64,000 nt of DNA from Octopus bimaculoides (Eukaryota): contig NC_068981.1 in the NCBI RefSeq assembly GCF_001194135.2, forward strand, positions 49,548,218 to 49,612,217. Reading direction: 5' to 3'. This document shows positions 6,330-55,679 of the stretch, in pieces (position 1 is the stretch's first letter; every line of letters starts with the position of its first letter). Under the pieces are notes generated by a model that was not told the DNA's origin, made no database searches, and saw nothing but the letters and a program-made list of their open reading frames with translations. The position numbers and the translations under genes were made by a program.

Positions 6330-7860
6330 NNNNNNNNNNNNNNNNNNNNNNNNNNNNNNNNNNNNNNNNNNNNNNNNNNNNNNNNNNNNNNNNNNNNNNN
6401 NNNNNNNNNNNNNNNNNNNNNNNNNNNNNNNNNNNNNNNNNNNNNNNNNNNNNNNNNNNNNNNNNNNNNNNNNNNNNNNNNNNNNNNNNNNNNNNNNNNN
6501 NNNNNNNNNNNNNNNNNNNNNNNNNNNNNNNATATATATATATATATATAGTATCAGTAATACCCGTCATTTACTGCTTCTCGGATGAGATGCTATATAG
6601 AAGAAGAGGTTTACAGAATCTAGTTGACTGCGAATGCACTGAAAATGATGCAGGTCAAGTGGAACACCCATTTGTCAACTTTTCTTTTGACATTTGAGTA
6701 GGCCGTGTGCCGAAGGAGAATTGAAAGATTCAGTTTAGAATCTGGACGAAGGTGAGTCTACCACCACAAATTTAGGTTTACTCGTCCTGTATCTGTGTGT
6801 TATACCAGACGAAACATATAATAATACAAGTAGGACAAAGATAGACTTGATGTTGCAATCAAGCAACTATGAGTGTTCGAACTTGAGTTTTTTTAATGCT
6901 CACGGCAAAAGAAAATGGGATAGGAAACTGCAACGGCTTAATTTGGAATGGAAATTATATAGTATAACTGGTATGCGAGGAACAAAGACGGTGTCACCCT
7001 CACCACAATCCGTAAGAATATATGCCTCAGTTCAGTTGTACCATAGCATAATTTTGGATAAACAAACGAAAAAAGACACAAACATACAGATGATCTCTCT
7101 TATATATATACATATANNNNNNNNNNNNNNNNNNNNNNNNNNNNNNNNNNNNNNNNNNNNNNNNNNNNNNNNNNNNNNNNNNNNNNNNNNNNNNNNNNNN
7201 NNNNNNNNNNNNNNNNNNNNNNNNNNNNNNNNNNNNNNNNNNNNNNNNNNNNNNNNNNNNNNNNNNNNNNNNNNNNNNNNNNNNNNNNNNNNNNNNNNNN
7301 NNNNNNNNNNNNNNNNNNNNNNNNNNNNNNNNNNNNNNNNNNNNNNNNNNNNNNNNNNNNNNNNNNNNNNNNNNNNNNNNNNNNNNNNNNNNNNNNNNNN
7401 NNNNNNNNNNNNNNNNNNNNNNNNNNNNNNNNNNNNNNNNNNNNNNNNNNNNNNNNNNNNNNNNNNNNNNNNNNNNNNNNNNNNNNNNNNNNNNNNNNNN
7501 NNNNNNNNNNNNNNNNNNNNNNNNNNNNNNNNNNNNNNNNNNNNNNNNNNNNNNNNNNNNNNNNNNNNNNNNNNNNNNNNNNNNNNNNNNNNNNNNNNNN
7601 NNNNNNNNNNNNNNNNNNNNNNNNNNNNNNNNNNNNNNNNNNNNNNNNNNNNNNNNNNNNNNNNNNNNNNNNNNNNNNNNNNNNNNNNNNNNNNNNNNNN
7701 NNNNNNNNNNNNNNNNNNNNNNNNNNNNNNNNNNNNNNNNNNNNNNNNNNNNNNNNNNNNNNNNNNNNNNNNNNNNNNNNNNNNNNNNNNNNNNNNNNNN
7801 NNNNNNNNNNNNNNNNNNNNNNNNNNNNNNNNNNNNNNNNNNNNNNNNNNNNNNNNNNNN

Positions 7861-19137: not shown

Positions 19138-20645
19138 TTGATCATCAATACTTCGAGTAATAATAATAAAGTCAGAAAAAAATATTAAAAGGTAACACTT
19201 ATTAGGAATATCAGACAAATCAATTCACTGAAATAGAATAAGTTTGCGCAATAATTATTTCATTTCCATAAAAGCAGAAACATATATAATTTAGATCTGC
19301 TAATATCATGTTCTTTTAGGAGCAAATGTATGACTTCATAATACTGTGCAAATTCGGATTGTCTCTATCACTGATGGTAGACGTATTTCAATATCGATTT
19401 TCGAAGATGCTATCACATGTTTCGATGTAAAATTTTGGGTTTCTATGTCAACTTCCATAACATACTTTAGAACATCAGAGTTGAGTTTTGCAAAAGTGCC
19501 CAAGGTTTGTAGATCTTAAAATTTAGTCTACTGCATGGTTTGATCAAGTAACGCGGTACACCGGCGTTTCAGCTATAAGCAAATTGCAGTTATTTATTAT
19601 GTTGCATTCATTATCTGTATTATTGTAGCAATACTGTACAGAATAAGTTACGTTTCCTTTAGATTATTAGGTGCTTTCTTCCATAATATTATTTGGCTAT
19701 GTCACCTACTGTATTCCATAATGCTAAATGATATTTTGTTAAATTGAACACAATTCCTCCATTAGACACGCAATCTATAACATTTTTGCAATCAGAGGAG
19801 GTGTATATATATATATATATATATATATANNNNNNNNNNNNNNNNNNNNNNNNNNNNNNNNNNNNNNNNNNNNNNNNNNNNNNNNNNNNNNNNNNNNNNN
19901 NNNNNNNNNNNNNNNNNNNNNNNNNNNNNNNNNNNNNNNNNNNNNNNNNNNNNNNNNNNNNNNNNNNNNNNNNNNNNNNNNNNNNNNNNNNNNNNNNNNN
20001 NNNNNNNNNNNNNNNNNNNNNNNNNNNNNNNNNNNNNNNNNNNNNNNNNNNNNNNNNNNNNNNNNNNNNNNNNNNNNNNNNNNNNNNNNNNNNNNNNNNN
20101 NNNNNNNNNNNNNNNNNNNNNNNNNNNNNNNNNNNNNNNNNNNNNNNNNNNNNNNNNNNNNNNNNNNNNNNNNNNNNNNNNNNNNNNNNNNNNNNNNNNN
20201 NNNNNNNNNNNNNNNNNNNNNNNNNNNNNNNNNNNNNNNNNNNNNNNNNNNNNNNNNNNNNNNNNNNNNNNNNNNNNNNNNNNNNNNNNNNNNNNNNNNN
20301 NNNNNNNNNNNNNNNNNNNNNNNNNNNNNNNNNNNNNNNNNNNNNNNNNNNNNNNNNNNNNNNNNNNNNNNNNNNNNNNNNNNNNNNNNNNNAAAAAAAA
20401 AAAATAAAAAAAAAACTTGCTATAGAATTTTATTTCATCTAAGCAAGATTTTAATAAAAGTAAATATGCAAATCCTCAGCCGTCAATGCTATCACTTATA
20501 AGCGTGTGTCCATGGTTAATTTGCATATGAAAAGCACCTACTGGCCCATTTCCTCAAACAACTTCCGTTGTTTTGACTGTGGCATATTGAGCCGCAATTC
20601 TCTCGCTTTCTCACTCTCTCCCCTCTATCTACCCCTCTATCCCTA

Positions 20646-33492: not shown

Positions 33493-35102
33493 GTAAGTAT
33501 GTCACCTAAAGGGAATCATGTTCTTTTAGATTTTTTCATTTTTTTTTTTTTTTTTTTTNNNNNNNNNNNNNNNNNNNNNNNNNNNNNNNNNNNNNNNNNN
33601 NNNNNNNNNNNNNNNNNNNNNNNNNNNNNNNNNNNNNNNNNNNNNNNNNNNNNNNNNNNNNNNNNNNNNNNNNNNNNNNNNNNNNNNNNNNNNNNNNNNN
33701 NNNNNNNNNNNNNNNNNNNNNNNNNNNNNNNNNNNNNNNNNNNNNNNNNNNNNNNNNNNNNNNNNNNNNNNNNNNNNNNNNNNNNNNNNNNNNNNNNNNN
33801 NNNNNNNNNNNNNNNNNNNNNNNNNNNNNNNNNNNNNNNNNNNNNNNNNNNNNNNNNNNNNNNNNNNNNNNNNNNNNNNNNNNNNNNNNNNNNNNNNNNN
33901 NNNNNNNNNNNNNNNNNNNNNNNNNNNNNNNNNNNNNNNNNNNNNNNNNNNNNNNNNNNNNNNNNNNNNNNNNNNNNNNNNNNNNNNNNNNNNNNNNNNN
34001 NNNNNNNNNNNNNNNNNNNNNNNNNNNNNNNNNNNNNATATATATATAGCATGGTTACATACGTGCATAAGTATTATGAGTGTTAGTGTGTGCTTCCTTA
34101 GGAATTGTTACATCTAATTTGAAATGTTGCAGATTCTGCGTCTAAAGTGACAGACTTACTATTTAGTTTAATAGTGTGCATATTATAATATTTATTAAAA
34201 TATTCAAACCAGTGTTTACTGAAATAAAATTATCTTTCTTCTAACGTTGCACTTAACACATATAAATTTTCCTTCCTACAAATCGGCAAACATACATTTA
34301 GCTTTATTTCAAGTATCACCGCATTCAGTGGTATACTAAGTCGAATCTTATCGCCGATTCATAACACTCAAACTTCTTTCAGCTGGTTGTATATAAAACA
34401 ACACAAACAGTGTCTTTAAAAATATATCTAAATTGAATTAACTTTTACTTTATAGCCATGGATTGTTCTCACTGGAAACGTTGAATACTGTGTTTATTAA
34501 TATTTCACTTGACAGGTTAAATGTAGCTACCTAAATTAAGTTTAATAATTCAACTGCTCTTAAGGTTACAAAGCTTGTTTGGAGAGATTTTATCACGGAC
34601 TCAGTCTAAAGCAGACGCAACGTTTAAATACTGCAGATGACCTTACAGAGGTCTAGCCTATACATATATGTATGTATATNNNNNNNNNNNNNNNNNNNNN
34701 NNNNNNNNNNNNNNNNNNNNNNNNNNNNNNNNNNNNNNNNNNNNNNNNNNNNNNNNNNNNNNNNNNNNNNNNNNNNNNNNNNNNNNNNNNNNNNNNNNNN
34801 NNNNNNNNNNNNNNNNNNNNNNNNNNNNNNNNNNNNNNNNNNNNNNNNNNNNNNNNNNNNNNNNNNNNNNNNNNNNNNNNNNNNNNNNNNNNNNNNNNNN
34901 TATATATATCCTAAACCGTTATATGCAATAACAGTTTTGGGATAGTTTGTAAGACACTTGTTGTTTACTAATGTATTTTTAGAATTTTTTTTTATTCTTA
35001 TACATTACACAACTTTGTTAATGCTATATGACGCACTCTGAATAATATTTATATTTCTTTTTCTTTTTACAGAAAGTGCCTGTCACTAAGGTTGTTAATC
35101 GG

Positions 35103-36325
35103 ATGCGTGTTCCCATGACGACGAAGGCTTTTGAAGTGCTATTATGGCTACAAACTGGCCTCGTTCTAGCCGTGGCAGTTGTGCTGCGGGTGACGTCGGC
35201 CGAATGCAAATTCCCCAGTTTTATGCACACGGAGCAGAATGCTTGGGTACGAGGTTACGAAAAAGGTGACCGATTTGTGGCGTACTTTCAAGATGGTATT
35301 ATGAAAGCCAGTAGTTGTCGCGATCGACAATGTACACGATACGAAAGAAAATGTATAGAAGAGTTCCCTAACGGTAAATATATAGCATCTCACATAGAAA
35401 TTGCTCATTCGACCAGTTATGTTTGTATGGAATTCTTGCGTCGAGGTGAAATCATTGTTCAGCTAAAACAATCAGAAATATCTAAAACGAATTATCCAGA
35501 ACTTTGTAATACGTTAATGTTAGATATGTGGCCATTAGTACTGCTAGAAAAACTACTTGAGCACAAAGTTAGCTGCCCATTCTCAGGGGGTTACAATTTA
35601 CAAATGTTTGATAGCAGTGGGTCTGCGCTATGCCGTGAAGAAATAGTTCCTATTAGGCTTGAAAGTGAATGTGAATCTGGAGAAGGTATGATGATTCATT
35701 TTAGAACGAAGGCTTGTATACACAAAGATTTAAATATGGAAGTAAAACAGAAATTATATTGTCTTGCACATTGGAATGAAGGCCCGTTCAGATTCATCAT
35801 TCTTCGAGAAAAAAATCGACGCGACCATATCTGGTCTCTACGAGTAAAAGAGCCTGTTAATGAAATCAAAACCGCAGCTTTATTCATGGTGCCTGTCTGT
35901 GACACTGGGGAAGAAATTACTCAAACGAAAATGTATCTGGAATTGAAACTTGATAAGTATGTGGTGTCAACAACCTGCGCCGACGAGTTCAAAGATTGTG
36001 CACAATACGTGCAGTTTTGTGATTCAGGGTATCGCCAACATTGCTCAAATTCATGTCGAGACTGTCGTCAAGACGTAATTAAATTATGTCCGTTTTCTGA
36101 GCGCTTGCGTAGCACTTGGGTGCAAAGCATGAAAAAAAATAAGCAACTCTCCATAAATATCACACATTACCAAATCTCTATTCAAACTCTTGGGATGTTT
36201 CACTGTCTAGTTGCCAAAGGTAAAAGTACACCAGATAGTGATGTTCTTTTACAATTGTTCCAGAATGGATGTTACCCAAGATACACATGTCTTCAAATTG
36301 AGAAAACAGCACCGTCAGTTATAAG
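35103..36325 (+). CDS. First coding exon of a secreted/extracellular Cys-rich repeat protein (signal peptide + APCDD1-like/DUF704x-like beta modules + ShKT-like motif); gene continues 3'
   Basis: 417-codon stop-free, non-repetitive frame (35076-36329). A strong acceptor TTTCTTTTTCTTTTTACAG precedes 35073. The first in-frame ATG at 35103 (alternative 35115) is followed by hydrophobic VLLWLQTGLVLAVAVVLRVTSA|EC, i.e. signal-peptide-like. The donor AG|GTAAAT follows 36325 (phase 2). Modules start with CKFP (35205), CPFSGGY (35574) and CPFS (36087). Family assignment is by eye only. Confidence 0.85.
35976..36065 (+). other. ShKT (ShK-toxin-like) six-cysteine motif within the CDS
   Basis: CADEFKDCAQYVQFCDSGYRQHCSNSCRDC = C-x6-C-x6-C-x7-C-x3-C-x2-C, with the C-x-D start and the terminal C-x3-C-x2-C typical of ShKT domains. 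Confidence 0.7.
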
Positions 36326-36894
36326 GTAAATATTCATTTCTGTTTCACTCATTGACATAAATGTCTACTATGAAAATGATTACACATTTAATTTAAATAT
36401 TTGTCCTAAACATAATAAATACTCCTAATAAGAAAAATAGCAAAAATAACAGCAGTAATAAAATATAATTACTGTAATTAATATCATTTTGATAACTTAC
36501 ATACGAATTTCGGAAACTAATGACGACACCCACAAATTTCGTGGCAACCTTAACTTTTGTACTAGAATGGGCCTTATGTTATCATCTTCAGAAATCAGAA
36601 AACAAATTAAGCATGTGTACTTATCGATAATAATAAGAAGAAGAACTACCCATGAGGATCCCACGGTTATTTTGAAAATTGTATGATGAAATTGGATATT
36701 TTTCTGAAAGATTTGATTGTTATGAAGATGTGAAAATCCTCATAAACAGCACTGATGGGTAAATCAGTCAACCAATTAATCAATCAATCAATCAATCAGT
36801 CAGTCAATATGTTTATATGTCTCCCCATCACTCTATTTGTCTGTCTATCTACCTACACATCTAACTATTAGTCTATCTACCTACCTAGATGTAT

Positions 36895-37249: not shown

Positions 37250-40200
37250 TTACACGGCATTGAAGTTCTAATCTGCTAAATTGAGCATCTTGTAGCATCT
37301 CACTCCGGGGTCTGACAACTAATTTTAATCTCTTGCAGTTTAGGGCCTTTATGCACTTAAACAATACTCTTTCTACTTTCGTATTGAAGACATCTTTGGG
37401 TGTTTTGTAGAAATAAAGATGATTTCTGCACAATATTTAACCTCAACAATTTAAGATCAATCTTCACAAAGTTTAATTTCAGACTGGTTTTCAGACTTCT
37501 TTTTAGGAAGGCTCAAAAATAACCGGCAGGTACATGAATTGTCTAATGTCTTGTTTCCGAAATTTCATACCTCAGCTTGGTATAATACTCTGCTTCTTGA
37601 TTACAGTATCAGATGATCATGACACTCTAATTACAGACTCAACAATTTTATCACCATCTTTACTGTCCGGACTTTATTTCAATCTTCTCCTTCCAGTTTA
37701 TATAAAAAAGCTCCATAAACTTGTTTTATCGTTTTCTGTGCATGCACAACGAAACCTCTTACAAAAATCTTATAGCAACAGTATTAGCATACCTAAGCAT
37801 TTGTACTGATTTGGGTCTAACTGTAGTTCCTCTGATGCAAGATGAGCTATAATATCATTTCTATTATCGTACATTCTAAAATGCTATATATCATTCTCTG
37901 AATCTAATTTACGTTTCAGTTTATTTTCTATGACGCTGTAATAATTTCCTTCATCTCTTCCTTCAAGAGTCCTCTCTTTAAACAAACTCATCTAGACGTG
38001 TGACACATTATCGCATGCATTTTTAAAACACACTGAATGGAGAAAATTTACTTGGAAGTTTTGTTTCTTTTTCGCTTCATGTCACTATTTATTTTAATTT
38101 GATCTCATTAACACTAATTATATCACTAATTATCATCTCTTGAAGAATGACTGGGTAATGTTTTCTCTAGAACTTCAGAATTTATATTAGTAAACCCTTG
38201 TTTCTCTCTCTCTCTCTTTGTCGCTTACTCTCTGCTTTTTCTAGTATAAACGGATTACAATGGATTACGGTTGCCTATTCCTGTGGAGTGTAAATATTGT
38301 TATCATCGGCTTTTTATTTTTATTCTTAAATTCTTCATTTTGCCTCTCAGTGTTTCCTCTTCACTATTTTATAAGGGGTTATACATCGCTTGTAAATTAC
38401 TGGCAAATCCATTTGCATTTTAATCAAAGGTTGTACAAAATGATAGTTTACCAAGGACGTCTTGTATTTAAACAATTTTGCTTTTGTCATCTGCTAGTAA
38501 TCCGAGATACACTCATTTCAGGATTTAATATTCGAGGCATTATCTAGATCCATTTCAGTAATGATGTTTCCTGCTTCATTTCTGTCAAAGAAATTTTCTA
38601 ATTTTCAAATGTCATCCCGATTTCTCTATAGATATTCTTACAGAAAATCTAGTTGATAATTGTACTTTCCATAAAGTTTAAATTTCTCATGAAAAAAGAT
38701 TTATTTTTCCTGAGTAAATGTCGTTCCTTAGCTTGTTAAGAATAATTGTCAAATTTGTTAGACACTGTAAATAGGCTAACTGTACTGTCCGATGTTGAAA
38801 TGCAGTTTCTAACAGACATAGCATTTTCTTCGAGATCTTGAAGATTTCTGGACAAAACGTGATTCATACACCTTCCTTTTATCGATCCTCACAGTCTATG
38901 AATTAGTCGTTCTACATCTTCCACTTATTCAGACTATCTTATCGATCTTTAATTGGCTTTTCGTATATTTCCTCATTTTCAGACGCTTTTTTGTGTCCAT
39001 CACACATTGAATATATCATATATACATATTAGCATATCTTTTTCCACAATGTTCACAGTTAAGAGATTTTACACAAGGTATCCACCCGGAACTAGTCGGA
39101 GATATCAAGCAACGTTTCTTTTCTATTTGTCTTACAATAGCAGGCAATCACATTGTTACATCATATGTTGAAATACACTCATTTAGATTTATCAATATGT
39201 TTCACAGAAATTTGTTATATTCTTTCAGTCCGTAACCATGGAAAAAGTATGGTTCAGTTACATTTCTTATTACTACCTATCTGATACCGCTTTCATATAT
39301 TTGCTTTCATAATGGTAAAAGCCATCTGCGCATCAACATATTCATCGTAATTTTCTACTTCGTTTACCAACTATATTTTATCAGCGCATCTGGCATGCTT
39401 TCCTCAACTACGCTTCCACGCCAGTTCCTGTCTTCAACATTCCAAATTACGTCATCAATTTTCTTATTTCTTACATGCCCATCAAATAAATCACTCCGCT
39501 CCGATTGAAGAAACGCTTTTGATAGTAGAAATGGATGATTTTAATGCTTTTAGTTCGAATAACGTCGGCCACAAATTTTGTTTTCTCCCTCCTGTTAAAG
39601 TAAACCTATCACAAAATTGATGTTGCTCGCACACGATGTTTTAGTGTTTCGATAACTGTTTTGAACCCTCTTTCCTATCTGGGATTTATGTCTTAGATAT
39701 GCCCTTGCACCTTTTTAGCATTTTTCCATAGCCCTTTGGACCATTCTTCTATGCAGCGCAAATATTTACGTAATGTTTTAATATCCGTCTGCTTTCCTCT
39801 ATTTCTTTCCAAACACTTCACCTACTAAAATTGAAGCGGATCTGACCAAGTCCCTTGTTTCCGTTACATCTTTTAGCCCATTCTTCTATGCGACGCAAGT
39901 CTTAACGCAAAGTGTTAATATTGCCCTCAGTTCTCCGCTTCCATCATGCCCTCTGATTTCCTCATTCTGCCCTCTGATTTCCTCTTTTTCATTCCAACCA
40001 GTTCACCTACTAAAATTGAAACAGATCTGATCAAGTCCCTTGCCTCAGTTCGATCTTTTGTTAAAATGTATTTCAGAATCTCATCAACTTTTTGGGTCAC
40101 GCGTTTCACATTGTAGCAGTCGAAGCTTCTCAAATTCACCGGCTTGCTCTCTGTTCTTGTAACTATTATAGCATCGAGTTTTATCCAGAGCTTTCTCTAA

Positions 40201-52798: not shown

Positions 52799-53953
52799 CC
52801 CCACAACCGGAATATTCCAACAGATGGCCATCCATGCTCGTCATCAAATAACCAAAAGAAAAAGAATGAAAAATGGTCTAGGGAAGATCATAAAGAAGTT
52901 CTTACAGCTTTCTACCATGCCATATATTTCCCTACAGATAAATCTAATACTGTACAAACCTACTTAAACTGGAGACAGAAACACCTTGAAGTAAGACCCT
53001 ACATAGACAGTAACAAACTTGCCAACGTCAGAAGAAACATTATGAAAAAAAATTACTAACTGAAGTANNNNNNNNNNNNNNNNNNNNNNNNNNNNNNNNN
53101 NNNNNNNNNNNNNNNNNNNNNNNNNNNNNNNNNCATACAGAAATCGACGCAACAGAACTACATGATCTAAAAAATCAAATCATGATTGAATGGCTGAAAA
53201 TTAAAGAAACCAGTATGAATGAACGCGACACTCTCCCCAAAATTCGCAATTCGAACCAAAACCTGAAAATAATTGGTAAAATCCGCCTTGCACTTAAGGA
53301 TATAATTTCAGCTAATGATGTTGATATTACAGATCTCAACCACCTGTACTGTGCATCCGCAAAAATCTCAACGGTTCTATGTGGTGAAAAGATTAGAAAA
53401 CGACAACACTCCCACAAAAACCCTTCTTGGCAACAGCGCATTCAACACCAAATTAAGCTACATAGATCTGACATAGAATGTTTGAAAAACCTTAAATTTG
53501 ATAAGAGTATCAAACCTACAAAGACCCAAAAACTAAAGAAAAAATATAATGCGAAAACCATAGTTGACATTGATACCACCATAGAAACCATCAAGCAAAA
53601 GGTATGTGCTAAAGCTGCCCGTATAGCAAGGTATGAAAAGCGTGTTAGATTCTTCCGAGATAATAACATGTTGAAAAATAACCCCAAAACTTTCTACAGG
53701 AAGATAAGGAAAACACCAGTAACAATAAAGTCTGTCCCATCAAAAGAAGAAGTGCAAGAATTTTGGAATAAAATCTGGGCAGAAGATAAAGCACACAATG
53801 AAAAGGCCCCTTGGATTGATAGAATATCTACAGACCTAGACTCCTTAGAGGAGCAAATGTGGGAGGGGGTCAAGGTAGAAGATATACGATCTGCTCTCAG
53901 GATGTCAAGCAAATGGAAGTCTCCAGGAAAGGATAACATTCCTAACTTCTGGT
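52799..53953 (+). mobile_element. R4/Dong-clade non-LTR retrotransposon, N-terminal/pre-RT part, relatively young but frameshifted
   Basis: KWSREDHKEVLTAFYHA..WRQKHLEVRPYIDSNKLANVRRNIMKK, then ORF 53182-53953 with PSWQQRIQHQI, KQKVCAKAARIARYEKR, NPKTFYRKI, EFWNKIW and KWKSPGKDNIPNFW, which is the run-in to the R4 RT domain. Frameshifts occur in A-runs near 52870 and 53050. It is cut by N gaps. Confidence 0.88.
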
Positions 53954-55679
53954 NNNNNNNNNNNNNNNNNNNNNNNNNNNNNNNNNNNNNNNNNNNNNNN
54001 NNNNNNNNNNNNNNNNNNNNNNNNNNNNNNNNNNNNNNNNNNNNNNNNNNNNNGATAGATAGATAGATAGATAGATCGTTCGATAGATAGATAGATAGAT
54101 AGAAAGCTAGCTAGCTAGATAGATAGATCAAAATTATTGCACTCAAATTCGTTAGTACGCTGAGTTTCAAGAGTAATGCTAGTATTCAGCCATTTTGAAT
54201 TCAAATTCAGCATTCACATTCAAAATAGCTGAAGACTAGCGTCACACTTGACACTCGGAGTACCATCGAATTTGAATGAAACTGTTTTGATCCATACATG
54301 CAATTCCCAAGATGTTTTTTTGGATGCCCTTCTTCTCGTTTGTCCACTCACTCGTAGATGTGTGTGTTTGCGTGTGTGTGTGTGTGTGCGCGTGTGTGTG
54401 TGTGTGCGTGTGTGTGCGTATGTGCGCGCACGATCGTGTGTGTGTGTGCGAACGTGTGTGAGAGTGTATATATGTGACTCTCTTTGTGCGTTTATTTCAA
54501 TGACATTTTACAATCGAAGATTTTCAGATTTTACTATCATTATATTCATAAAACCAAGAAATAATATATTGATCGATTAAAGCTCACTATGTAGTGGATC
54601 ATATCGAATTTGAAAAATCATTTGGAAACGTTTGCCAACATTTTGAATAATTGTTACTTTCACAGATTCAGTAATTAATGCTATCATTAAATCCCCTGGG
54701 TAACGCTGTTGTAATAATGCTTAAATTAGGTGTCAACAAAAAAATATATATTAATACGAAATTTTTATAGAACACATTTATAACTAAATATAGCCATATA
54801 TGTTACTTTTTTGGACAGCTTCTCATATTTTTTATTCTCTTCAAATCTGTTGAGAATAATTACTTTCAGATTAGTTTTGTCAAATATGTTTGCTAGACTT
54901 TTCTTGAAATAACCTCATTTTAAATTAAATGTTTCTTTTTATTTATCATGTCTACAAGGAAATGATATAAATCAATTTGTTTGGAAAATAGAAACGACAG
55001 ATTTAGTGTATTAAAAAGAGTTGATTTAAAATAGCATTAATAGTGCACACTACATGATAGTAACTAATTATATCAACACATGTGACATGGAAAACATGAA
55101 AGAAAACAAATTCCAGCTGTGATACTGTATCTCAGAGCAAATTTTTCTTGTAATTCAAGAGAAATCTGTTTCGGTGGTGTACAGGAATTGGATGATGCCG
55201 ACGAAATCGTATTATTAAAAATAAGATTCCAGGCGGTATGTGTTTTTTTCTGCAGTGCATTGAATGTATAATAAGTGTTACGGATAAACTGGTTCTAAAT
55301 ACACAGCCGCCGTGTGAATGACGACATATTCATATCTCTTTCACCTGCATATTGCATATTAATAGCGTAATACAGAGACAGACACATTGACAAGCATATA
55401 ATATATATATATATATATATATATANNNNNNNNNNNNNNNNNNNNNNNNNNNNNNNNNNNNNNNNNNNNNNNNNNNNNNNNNNNNNNNNNNNNNNNNNNN
55501 NNNNNNNNNNNNNNNNNNNNNNNNNNNNNNNNNNNNNNNNNNNNNNNNNNNNNNNNNNNNNNNNNNNNNNNNNNNNNNNNNNNNNNNNNNNNNNNNNNNN
55601 NNNNNNNNNNNNNNNNNNNNNNNNNNNNNNNNNNNNNNNNNNNNNNNNNNNNNNNNNNNNNNNNNNNNNNNNNNNNNNN

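Follow-up and report, generated by a model that had tools for sequence, protein, structure and literature searches.

The question raised by this locus is what is encoded by the one long uninterrupted open reading frame (ORF) in a 64,000-nucleotide stretch of the Octopus bimaculoides genome (contig NC_068981.1, positions 49,548,218 to 49,612,217 of the forward strand; hereafter the window, in which position 1 is the first letter): a secreted protein into which a toxin-like ShKT domain has been inserted, as a sequence-only reading of the segment 35103–36325 had proposed, or a part of something larger. Our analysis points to the latter. There is little room for doubt that this segment, judged by both sequence identity and domain architecture, is the first coding exon of the gene LOC106881850, and the best explanation overall, to which we assign a probability of approximately 85%, is that the exon belongs to a cysteine-rich cell-surface glycoprotein of 662 amino acids that is conserved among orthologues.

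Searches with tblastn showed that translation from the ATG at 35103 yields 408 amino acids that match residues 1–408 of the O. bimaculoides protein XP_052822410 (uncharacterized LOC106881850, 662 amino acids) with 100% identity, while the orthologues of O. sinensis and O. vulgaris are two substitutions away from this sequence, a protein of Acanthosepion (Sepia) pharaonis shows 84% identity and full-length relatives show 31–38%. All of the motifs quoted in the sequence-only reading (ECKFPSFM, YVCMEFLRRGEIIVQLKQS, CPFSGGY, LESECESGEG, CLAHWNEG, CPFSERLRSTWV and CYPRYTCLQIEKTAPSVIR) were located in this translation, and its description was exact in motifs and coordinates and correct as to a cephalopod origin; what it missed was that the 408 residues are the N-terminal portion of a protein of 662. 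An earlier O. bimaculoides annotation had split the gene into two proteins, one of 408 amino acids (exon 1) and one of 267 amino acids (A0A0L8IA96, exon 2), and the current RefSeq model fuses both of these older halves. The names given in UniProt are ‘ShKT domain-containing protein’ for the O. vulgaris entry and ‘DUF7043 domain-containing protein’ for the orthologue in Acanthosepion; a look-up of encoding-contig records for the 408-amino-acid product and for the Mya relative found none.

The exon boundaries are consistent with this identification. The window is AT-rich eukaryotic draft-genome sequence (approximately 30–35% G+C) with 17 N gaps, and the ORF (35076–36329, forward strand, 417 codons) is the sole long N-free ORF within it, its length being far above chance expectation for a genome of approximately 32% G+C. 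Taken mechanically, the ORF ends at an in-frame TAA (36327–36329), which lies within a splice donor; since the ORF is flanked by acceptor- and donor-like signals, its two ends are splice boundaries and not the end of the gene. The exon end that had been placed at 36325 is indeed the final exon base, with the donor following directly from 36326 (Table 1). Past residue 408 the protein models, XP_052822410 among them, run on as YRLGRS..., and residues 409–662 (254 amino acids, YRLGRSIEWPL...VCVPA) gave no tblastn match within the 64-kb window with a threshold as lax as E 10; exon 2 lies either more than 27 kb downstream or inside an N gap. On the other side, the O. vulgaris gene model could be aligned in frame to the window from 35070 onward, and the acceptor-like site implies an upstream 5' exon, which is probably untranslated. 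Because two N gaps lie at most 1.6 kb upstream of the coding exon, a 5' untranslated exon or the promoter may be partly hidden.

Table 1. Coordinates of the features identified in and around the first coding exon of LOC106881850 (positions are those of the window).
Feature	Position	Strand	Details
3' splice acceptor (putative)	35060..35072	+	Polypyrimidine tract (tttcttttta-cAG) immediately upstream of the coding exon; read directly
First coding exon, coding part	35103..36325	+	Residues 1–408 of the 662-residue LOC106881850 protein; codon 408 split, phase 2; tblastn 100%
Signal-peptide-like N-terminus	35103..35201	+	Residues 1–33; core LVLAVAVVL, cleavage-like site TSA/EC; hydrophobicity heuristic
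D1, Pfam DUF7043, all-β meander	35196..35519	+	Residues 32–139; 60.9 bits (cutoff 27), E 1.7e-16
D2, Pfam DUF7042, all-β	35565..35906	+	Residues 155–268; 39.7 bits (cutoff 27), E 5.5e-10
ShKT-type six-Cys module CADEFKDCAQYVQFCDSGYRQHCSNSCRDC	35976..36065	+	Residues 292–321; C-6-C-6-C-7-C-3-C-2-C
D3, start of second DUF7043-like domain	36081..36325	+	Residues 327–408; approximately the first three quarters, cut by the intron
5' splice donor GTAAAT	36326..36331	+	Exon/intron junction AG/GTAAAT; sequence read directly

Membership of the DUF7042/DUF7043 family, which had been suggested from the sequence, was confirmed by Pfam scores well above the cutoff for the first two domains (D1 and D2, Table 1). 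In the structure predicted by AlphaFold2 (AF2), D1 comprises seven strands with a predicted local distance difference test (pLDDT) score above 90, and D2, which contains the CPFSGGY and RLESECE motifs, exceeds 95. The part of D3 that lies in the window (approximately residues 329–408) scored 25.9 bits against DUF7043, just below the cutoff, and 19.5 bits against DUF7044; when continued into exon 2 (approximately residues 329–437), its DUF7043 score rose to 39.8 bits. Positions 5–77 of the 104 in the DUF7043 profile are covered in the window, and coverage reaches position 99 only with exon 2, so that the exon boundary cuts through D3. A fourth domain, D4, was recognised within residues 409–567 by a match to DUF7042 (E 1e-3).

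How these domains are related was examined by cutting a 130-sequence family alignment into sub-profiles and comparing them with hhalign. Residues 33–290 aligned to residues 325–565 with a probability of 98.8% (E 4.7e-17, 212 columns), D1 to D3 with 97.9% (E 3.3e-13) and D2 to D4 with 95.5% (E 1.5e-8), while the comparisons of D1 with D2 (1.2%) and of D3 with D4 (1.4%) were not significant. Judged by these profile comparisons, the predicted ectodomain is a tandem duplication of a unit of approximately 250 amino acids that is made up of two different all-β domains (D1+D2, then D3+D4). The earlier impression that the third module echoes the first is therefore upheld by the D1–D3 homology, whereas the second module is not a further repeat but the second half of unit 1, the hhalign value for D1 against D2 ruling out these two domains as repeats of each other. 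In the collinear full-length alignment with the named relatives, 28 columns of Cys, Gly, Trp, Glu or Pro are at least 90% conserved across the 130 sequences.

The compact six-Cys module (C292, C299, C306, C314, C318 and C321), which lies exactly where the sequence-only reading had placed it, is accepted here as a divergent ShKT domain at the level of the family. When homologous modules were isolated, 57 of 124 matched the Pfam ShK model at E≤0.01 (best 2.4e-8), as did 15 of 71 full-length relatives (best E 1.1e-6), and a profile built from the 124 modules, when run against the complete set of PDB sequences, retrieved ShKT-fold entries only, among them ShKT-Ts1 (the best match, 1.8e-4), aurelin, AcK1 and the ShKT domain of MMP23, with nearly all matches spanning the first to the sixth cysteine. 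Each of the six cysteines is at least 90% conserved in 130 relatives, and in the AF2 model built from the deep alignment the module consists of short helices (pLDDT 91–95). The ShKT assignment thus stands for the family, although the octopus module itself falls below the Pfam cutoff and is more divergent than most.

The module forms the linker between units 1 and 2, being separated by approximately 6–7 residues from the last strand of D2 (residues 278–285) and from C329 of D3. Most ShKT domains are accessory modules of bigger proteins of the secretory pathway (PMC6409789), and the octopus family conforms to this pattern: as in the large extracellular proteins grouped under PF01549 (MMP23, 2k72; astacin-ShKT; CAP-ShKT), a six-Cys module of approximately 30 amino acids ending in C-x3-C-x2-C accompanies a larger protein. 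It differs from them in that the module occurs as a single copy and is internal, between repeat units, rather than C-terminal, and DUF704x partner domains were not among the architectures in the literature searched (PMC6409789).

Both ends of the full-length protein carry hydrophobic segments. At the N-terminus the Kyte-Doolittle maximum over 10 amino acids is 3.1, the cleavage-like site precedes a conserved C-x-F-P motif, and a hydrophobic stretch is found in 103 of the 130 relatives. Outside the window are encoded a Ser/Thr/Pro-rich stretch that follows the repeats and the octopus C-terminus (...NRKNTYVITVMSVLFFLIPLVCVPA), in which a hydrophobic segment runs up to the last residue without a cytoplasmic part. 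With its hydrophobic segment at the very C-terminal end (...YVITVMSVLFFLIPLVCVPA), the protein lacks the type I arrangement, in which a transmembrane segment is followed by a cytoplasmic tail. A hydrophobic segment lies within the last 45 amino acids in 118/130 members, followed in nearly all by no more than 10 residues. Signals for glycosylphosphatidylinositol (GPI) attachment classically take this form, a terminal hydrophobic tail that lacks a cytoplasmic part, and on this basis the full-length protein is predicted to sit at the outer face of the plasma membrane, held there by a GPI anchor or at least by its tail. The label ‘secreted’ consequently does not fit the full-length protein, which is best described as a predicted membrane-tethered surface glycoprotein rather than a free secreted protein.

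Exhaustive HMMER searching of 1.84 billion cluster representatives (50% clustering, E≤1e-3) returned 426 representatives, 192 of them with E≤1e-30 and most with a length of 600–750 amino acids. DUF7043 was matched by 70 of 71 relatives, and the ShKT pattern, at approximately residues 290–320, was present in 125/153 sequences when defined strictly and in nearly all full-length sequences when the definition was relaxed. Named members comprised cephalopods (three species of Octopus, and Acanthosepion), bivalves (Mya, Ostrea, Pinctada), gastropods (Physella, Nucella, Batillaria, Plakobranchus, Elysia), the brachiopod Lingula and the nemertean Lineus, so that all of the named members sampled are lophotrochozoan. 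A further word-indexed search with a 71-sequence profile gave six proteins, of which one (Elysia) was new; the Pinctada and Elysia proteins carry the UniProt name ‘ShKT domain-containing protein’. Since the ShKT module occupies the same position across the molluscs, Lingula and Lineus, the fusion is older than the split of these phyla. The proposal that an invertebrate repeat family had gained a ShKT insert in a cephalopod protein is contradicted by this conservation and by the ShKT labels that orthologues already bear, and its novelty falls away, the architecture being annotated and widespread in molluscs.

The octopus protein is accordingly a member of an uncharacterised lophotrochozoan family defined by the Pfam entries PF23070, PF23069, PF23071 and PF23073 (DUF7043/DUF7042/DUF7044/DUF7045), with RefSeq loci that include LOC106881850 (the same gene), LOC115219228, Mya LOC128233008, Physella LOC131956645, Lingula LOC106152138 and Lineus LOC135493212. 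The architecture of the family is DUF7043-DUF7042-ShKT-DUF7043/7044-DUF7042/7045, known but functionally uncharacterised, and the octopus protein shares its domain order, conserved cysteines, ShKT position, length class (600–750 amino acids) and C-terminal tail. Gene structure differs: D1-D2-ShKT-D3 occupies a single exon in cephalopods, with octopus residues 1–408 on one exon, whereas the Physella acuta orthologue (JAPYMB010001166.1, 2001–12473) has approximately 10 coding exons, a difference suggesting that introns were either lost on the way to cephalopods or gained in the snail. The module was also considered as an exon-shuffled unit, and this was rejected, as the Physella exon that encodes the ShKT module also holds the last part of D2 and the first part of D3; with that shared exon in the snail and a single exon for all 408 residues in the octopus, no trace of exon shuffling is left.

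Predicted structures gave a confident fold for the first unit. The full-length model had a pLDDT of 71.7 (below 50 in the ShKT region), and Foldseek searches with it returned meaningless global matches only (template-modelling (TM) score approximately 0.09). The AF2 model of residues 33–328, built with the 130-sequence alignment, reached a pLDDT of 95.3 and a predicted TM score of 0.91, and shows in order the seven strands of D1, a short helix-and-loop connector, eight strands of D2 and the small helical ShKT module. Among the 50 Foldseek matches listed for this model, the best local ones were nitrophorins (lipocalins), avidins, LolA and a two-barrel MoaF protein; the nitrophorin matches had probabilities of 0.95–0.98, TM scores of 0.37–0.40 and root-mean-square deviations of 6–7 Å, with E above 0.05. 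Calycin-type barrels (nitrophorins, siderocalin, avidins) are thus the closest local matches to one β domain, over approximately 120–140 columns, and local matches of high probability were confined to the barrels of nitrophorin and avidin, but with TM scores of at most 0.40, E above 0.05 and 8–15% identity the likeness is a resemblance and not membership. Nothing was found by Foldseek in BFVD, and a sequence-profile search of the PDB with the whole family gave a chance match to CLK2 only (E 0.5).

Elsewhere in the window, nearly all of the 17 N runs (e.g. 7117–7860, 19830–20392, 33559–34037 and 34680–34900) are bordered by TA-rich, di- and tetranucleotide microsatellites, which translate as YIYIYI, SLSLSL or CVCVCV. 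A 294-codon ORF on the forward strand (53182–54066, end ...KWKSPGKDNIPNFW) enters an N gap and gave insignificant Pfam matches only; it looks like the segment just upstream of the reverse transcriptase domain in ORF2 of a non-LTR (long terminal repeat) retrotransposon.

Taken by itself, the exon could give rise to a free protein, since the stop codon right after the donor would end an unspliced transcript as an anchorless product of 408 residues, and two different explanations draw on this. According to one, the product is a secreted salivary or venom component in which the ShKT module blocks potassium channels in the manner of sea-anemone peptides, carried by the β modules. At the family level the module is indeed related to ShKT domains, and ShKT-type salivary products have a precedent in a blood-feeding snail, whose salivary gland produces ShKT peptides and CAP/M12-ShKT proteins (PMC6409789). 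However, block of the potassium-channel pore by ShKT domains requires a Lys-Tyr dyad (PMC6409789), and this dyad, found in ShK toxins, is absent between Cys3 and Cys4 of the octopus module (loop DSGYRQH) and present as KY in only 7 of 121 family modules, in which the loop is 4–12 residues long; a channel-modulating role, as the sequence-only reading had envisaged, therefore finds no support. The short connections that hold the module between large domains and the membrane-anchor signal of the full-length protein also speak against a toxin, as does the retention of the family by non-venomous bivalves, a brachiopod and a nemertean, always with one embedded module in the same place, and we regard this explanation as highly improbable. 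According to the other, the 408-residue product is a functional soluble isoform, arising by intron retention or through an alternative short 3' exon and serving, once secreted, as a decoy for the anchored form. In the O. vulgaris model CAI9714987 (461 amino acids), exon 1 is indeed joined to a 30-amino-acid exon, found in the window at 38589–38678 (+), rather than to the true exon 2, and cluster members from read assemblies include versions of 408 and 404 amino acids. Yet the exon ends inside D3, so that the 408-residue product would carry a truncated domain; the short database entries are accounted for by the older annotation, in which the gene was split; and the 30-amino-acid end has no domain match in Pfam, its window copy sharing 87% identity with the CAI9714987 C-terminus, against approximately 99% for exon 1. 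This intronic exon probably reflects either an error of gene prediction or a minor, truncated isoform, and a functional soluble form appears very unlikely.

The repeats had also been called APCDD1-type, and a third explanation would make the octopus protein a very distant invertebrate counterpart of APCDD1, with two tandem lipid-binding barrels at the cell surface that sequester lipidated ligands, e.g. Wnt. APCDD1 (8E0P/8E0R/8E0W) is a cell-surface protein with a signal peptide, tandem Cys-rich β-rich units, a stalk and a membrane anchor, and it is weakly lipocalin-like (PMC10193966); both this layout and the weak lipocalin resemblance recur in the octopus family, and a short G-x-W-V-S-like motif at the unit starts of both is not significant. 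The searches nevertheless gave no sign of common descent. Pfam APCDDC was matched neither by the window protein (E≤1) nor by any of 71 relatives (E≤0.01), the PDB profile search gave no APCDD1 match at E≤10 in a sequence set in which 8e0r, 8e0w and 8e0p are present, and no APCDD1 chain was among the 50 Foldseek matches listed. Direct hhalign comparison of the 8e0r ectodomain sequence with six family sub-profiles gave probabilities of at most 1.2% for all six, against 97.1% for the positive control of APCDD1 ABD1 with ABD2. The two proteins also differ in build, as the APCDD1 unit is a single barrel interrupted by a helix-loop insert and the octopus unit consists of two distinct β domains of approximately 7–8 strands; APCDD1 crosses the membrane as a type I protein and has a cytoplasmic tail, whereas the tail of the octopus family has no cytoplasmic part; and APCDD1 has no ShKT module, whereas the octopus family has one. 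Kinship with APCDD1 is not supported and an analogy of layout remains, which makes a distant counterpart of APCDD1 quite unlikely.

Exon 1 of an anchored, ShKT-containing surface glycoprotein is accordingly the reading that we retain, and several points weigh against it. The octopus module, as an isolated 41-amino-acid piece, scored 15.6 bits (E 0.024) against Pfam ShK, below the cutoff of 20.9 bits, and nothing was reported at E≤1 for the complete 408-residue protein. The Foldseek search of the PDB with the model of residues 33–328 gave no match at E≤1e-3, so that ligand binding could be inferred from the weak calycin resemblance only. The GPI-anchor prediction rests on a hydrophobicity heuristic, the junction between exons 1 and 2 is based on the RefSeq models together with full-length transcripts of Sepia among the cluster members, and a literature search for DUF7042–7045 and for the locus and accession numbers found no paper.

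For the anchored surface glycoprotein, a mechanism may be proposed in which the signal peptide would direct the protein into the secretory pathway and the tandem-duplicated all-β ectodomain would come to lie outside the cell, held by the Ser/Thr/Pro-rich stalk and the C-terminal hydrophobic tail, through GPI (or tail) anchoring, at the outer face of the plasma membrane. The barrel-like β domains could hold a ligand, possibly a hydrophobic one because of their weak resemblance to lipocalin- and avidin-type barrels, and the protein would then be a binding protein or co-receptor. The disulfide-stapled ShKT module may act as a rigid spacer or hinge that fixes the spacing or orientation of the units, or as a surface for protein contacts, and not as a potassium-channel plug. 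We put this ligand-binding surface-receptor mechanism forward tentatively, as one that is possible with odds somewhat below even. A broader proposal, which we consider unlikely as it stands, is that DUF7043/DUF7042-ShKT proteins in general would be lophotrochozoan GPI-anchored receptors, in which four barrel-like domains of a fold without a close solved relative catch hydrophobic or lipid-modified signals, in a manner like that of APCDD1 but without kinship to it, and an invariant ShKT linker sets the geometry.

As a sequence feature, the locus is unremarkable: RefSeq lists the gene, Pfam covers its domains and UniProt has given its orthologues the ShKT label, and no long-standing question is opened by it. 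The interest that remains lies in a large family (426 clusters at 50% identity) whose named members sampled are all lophotrochozoan, in a predicted structure of pLDDT 95 without a convincing solved relative, and in the use of a ShKT domain as a fixed internal linker, not as a terminal accessory or a toxin. Structural genomics, or expression work in octopus tissues, could thus reasonably be directed at this family.

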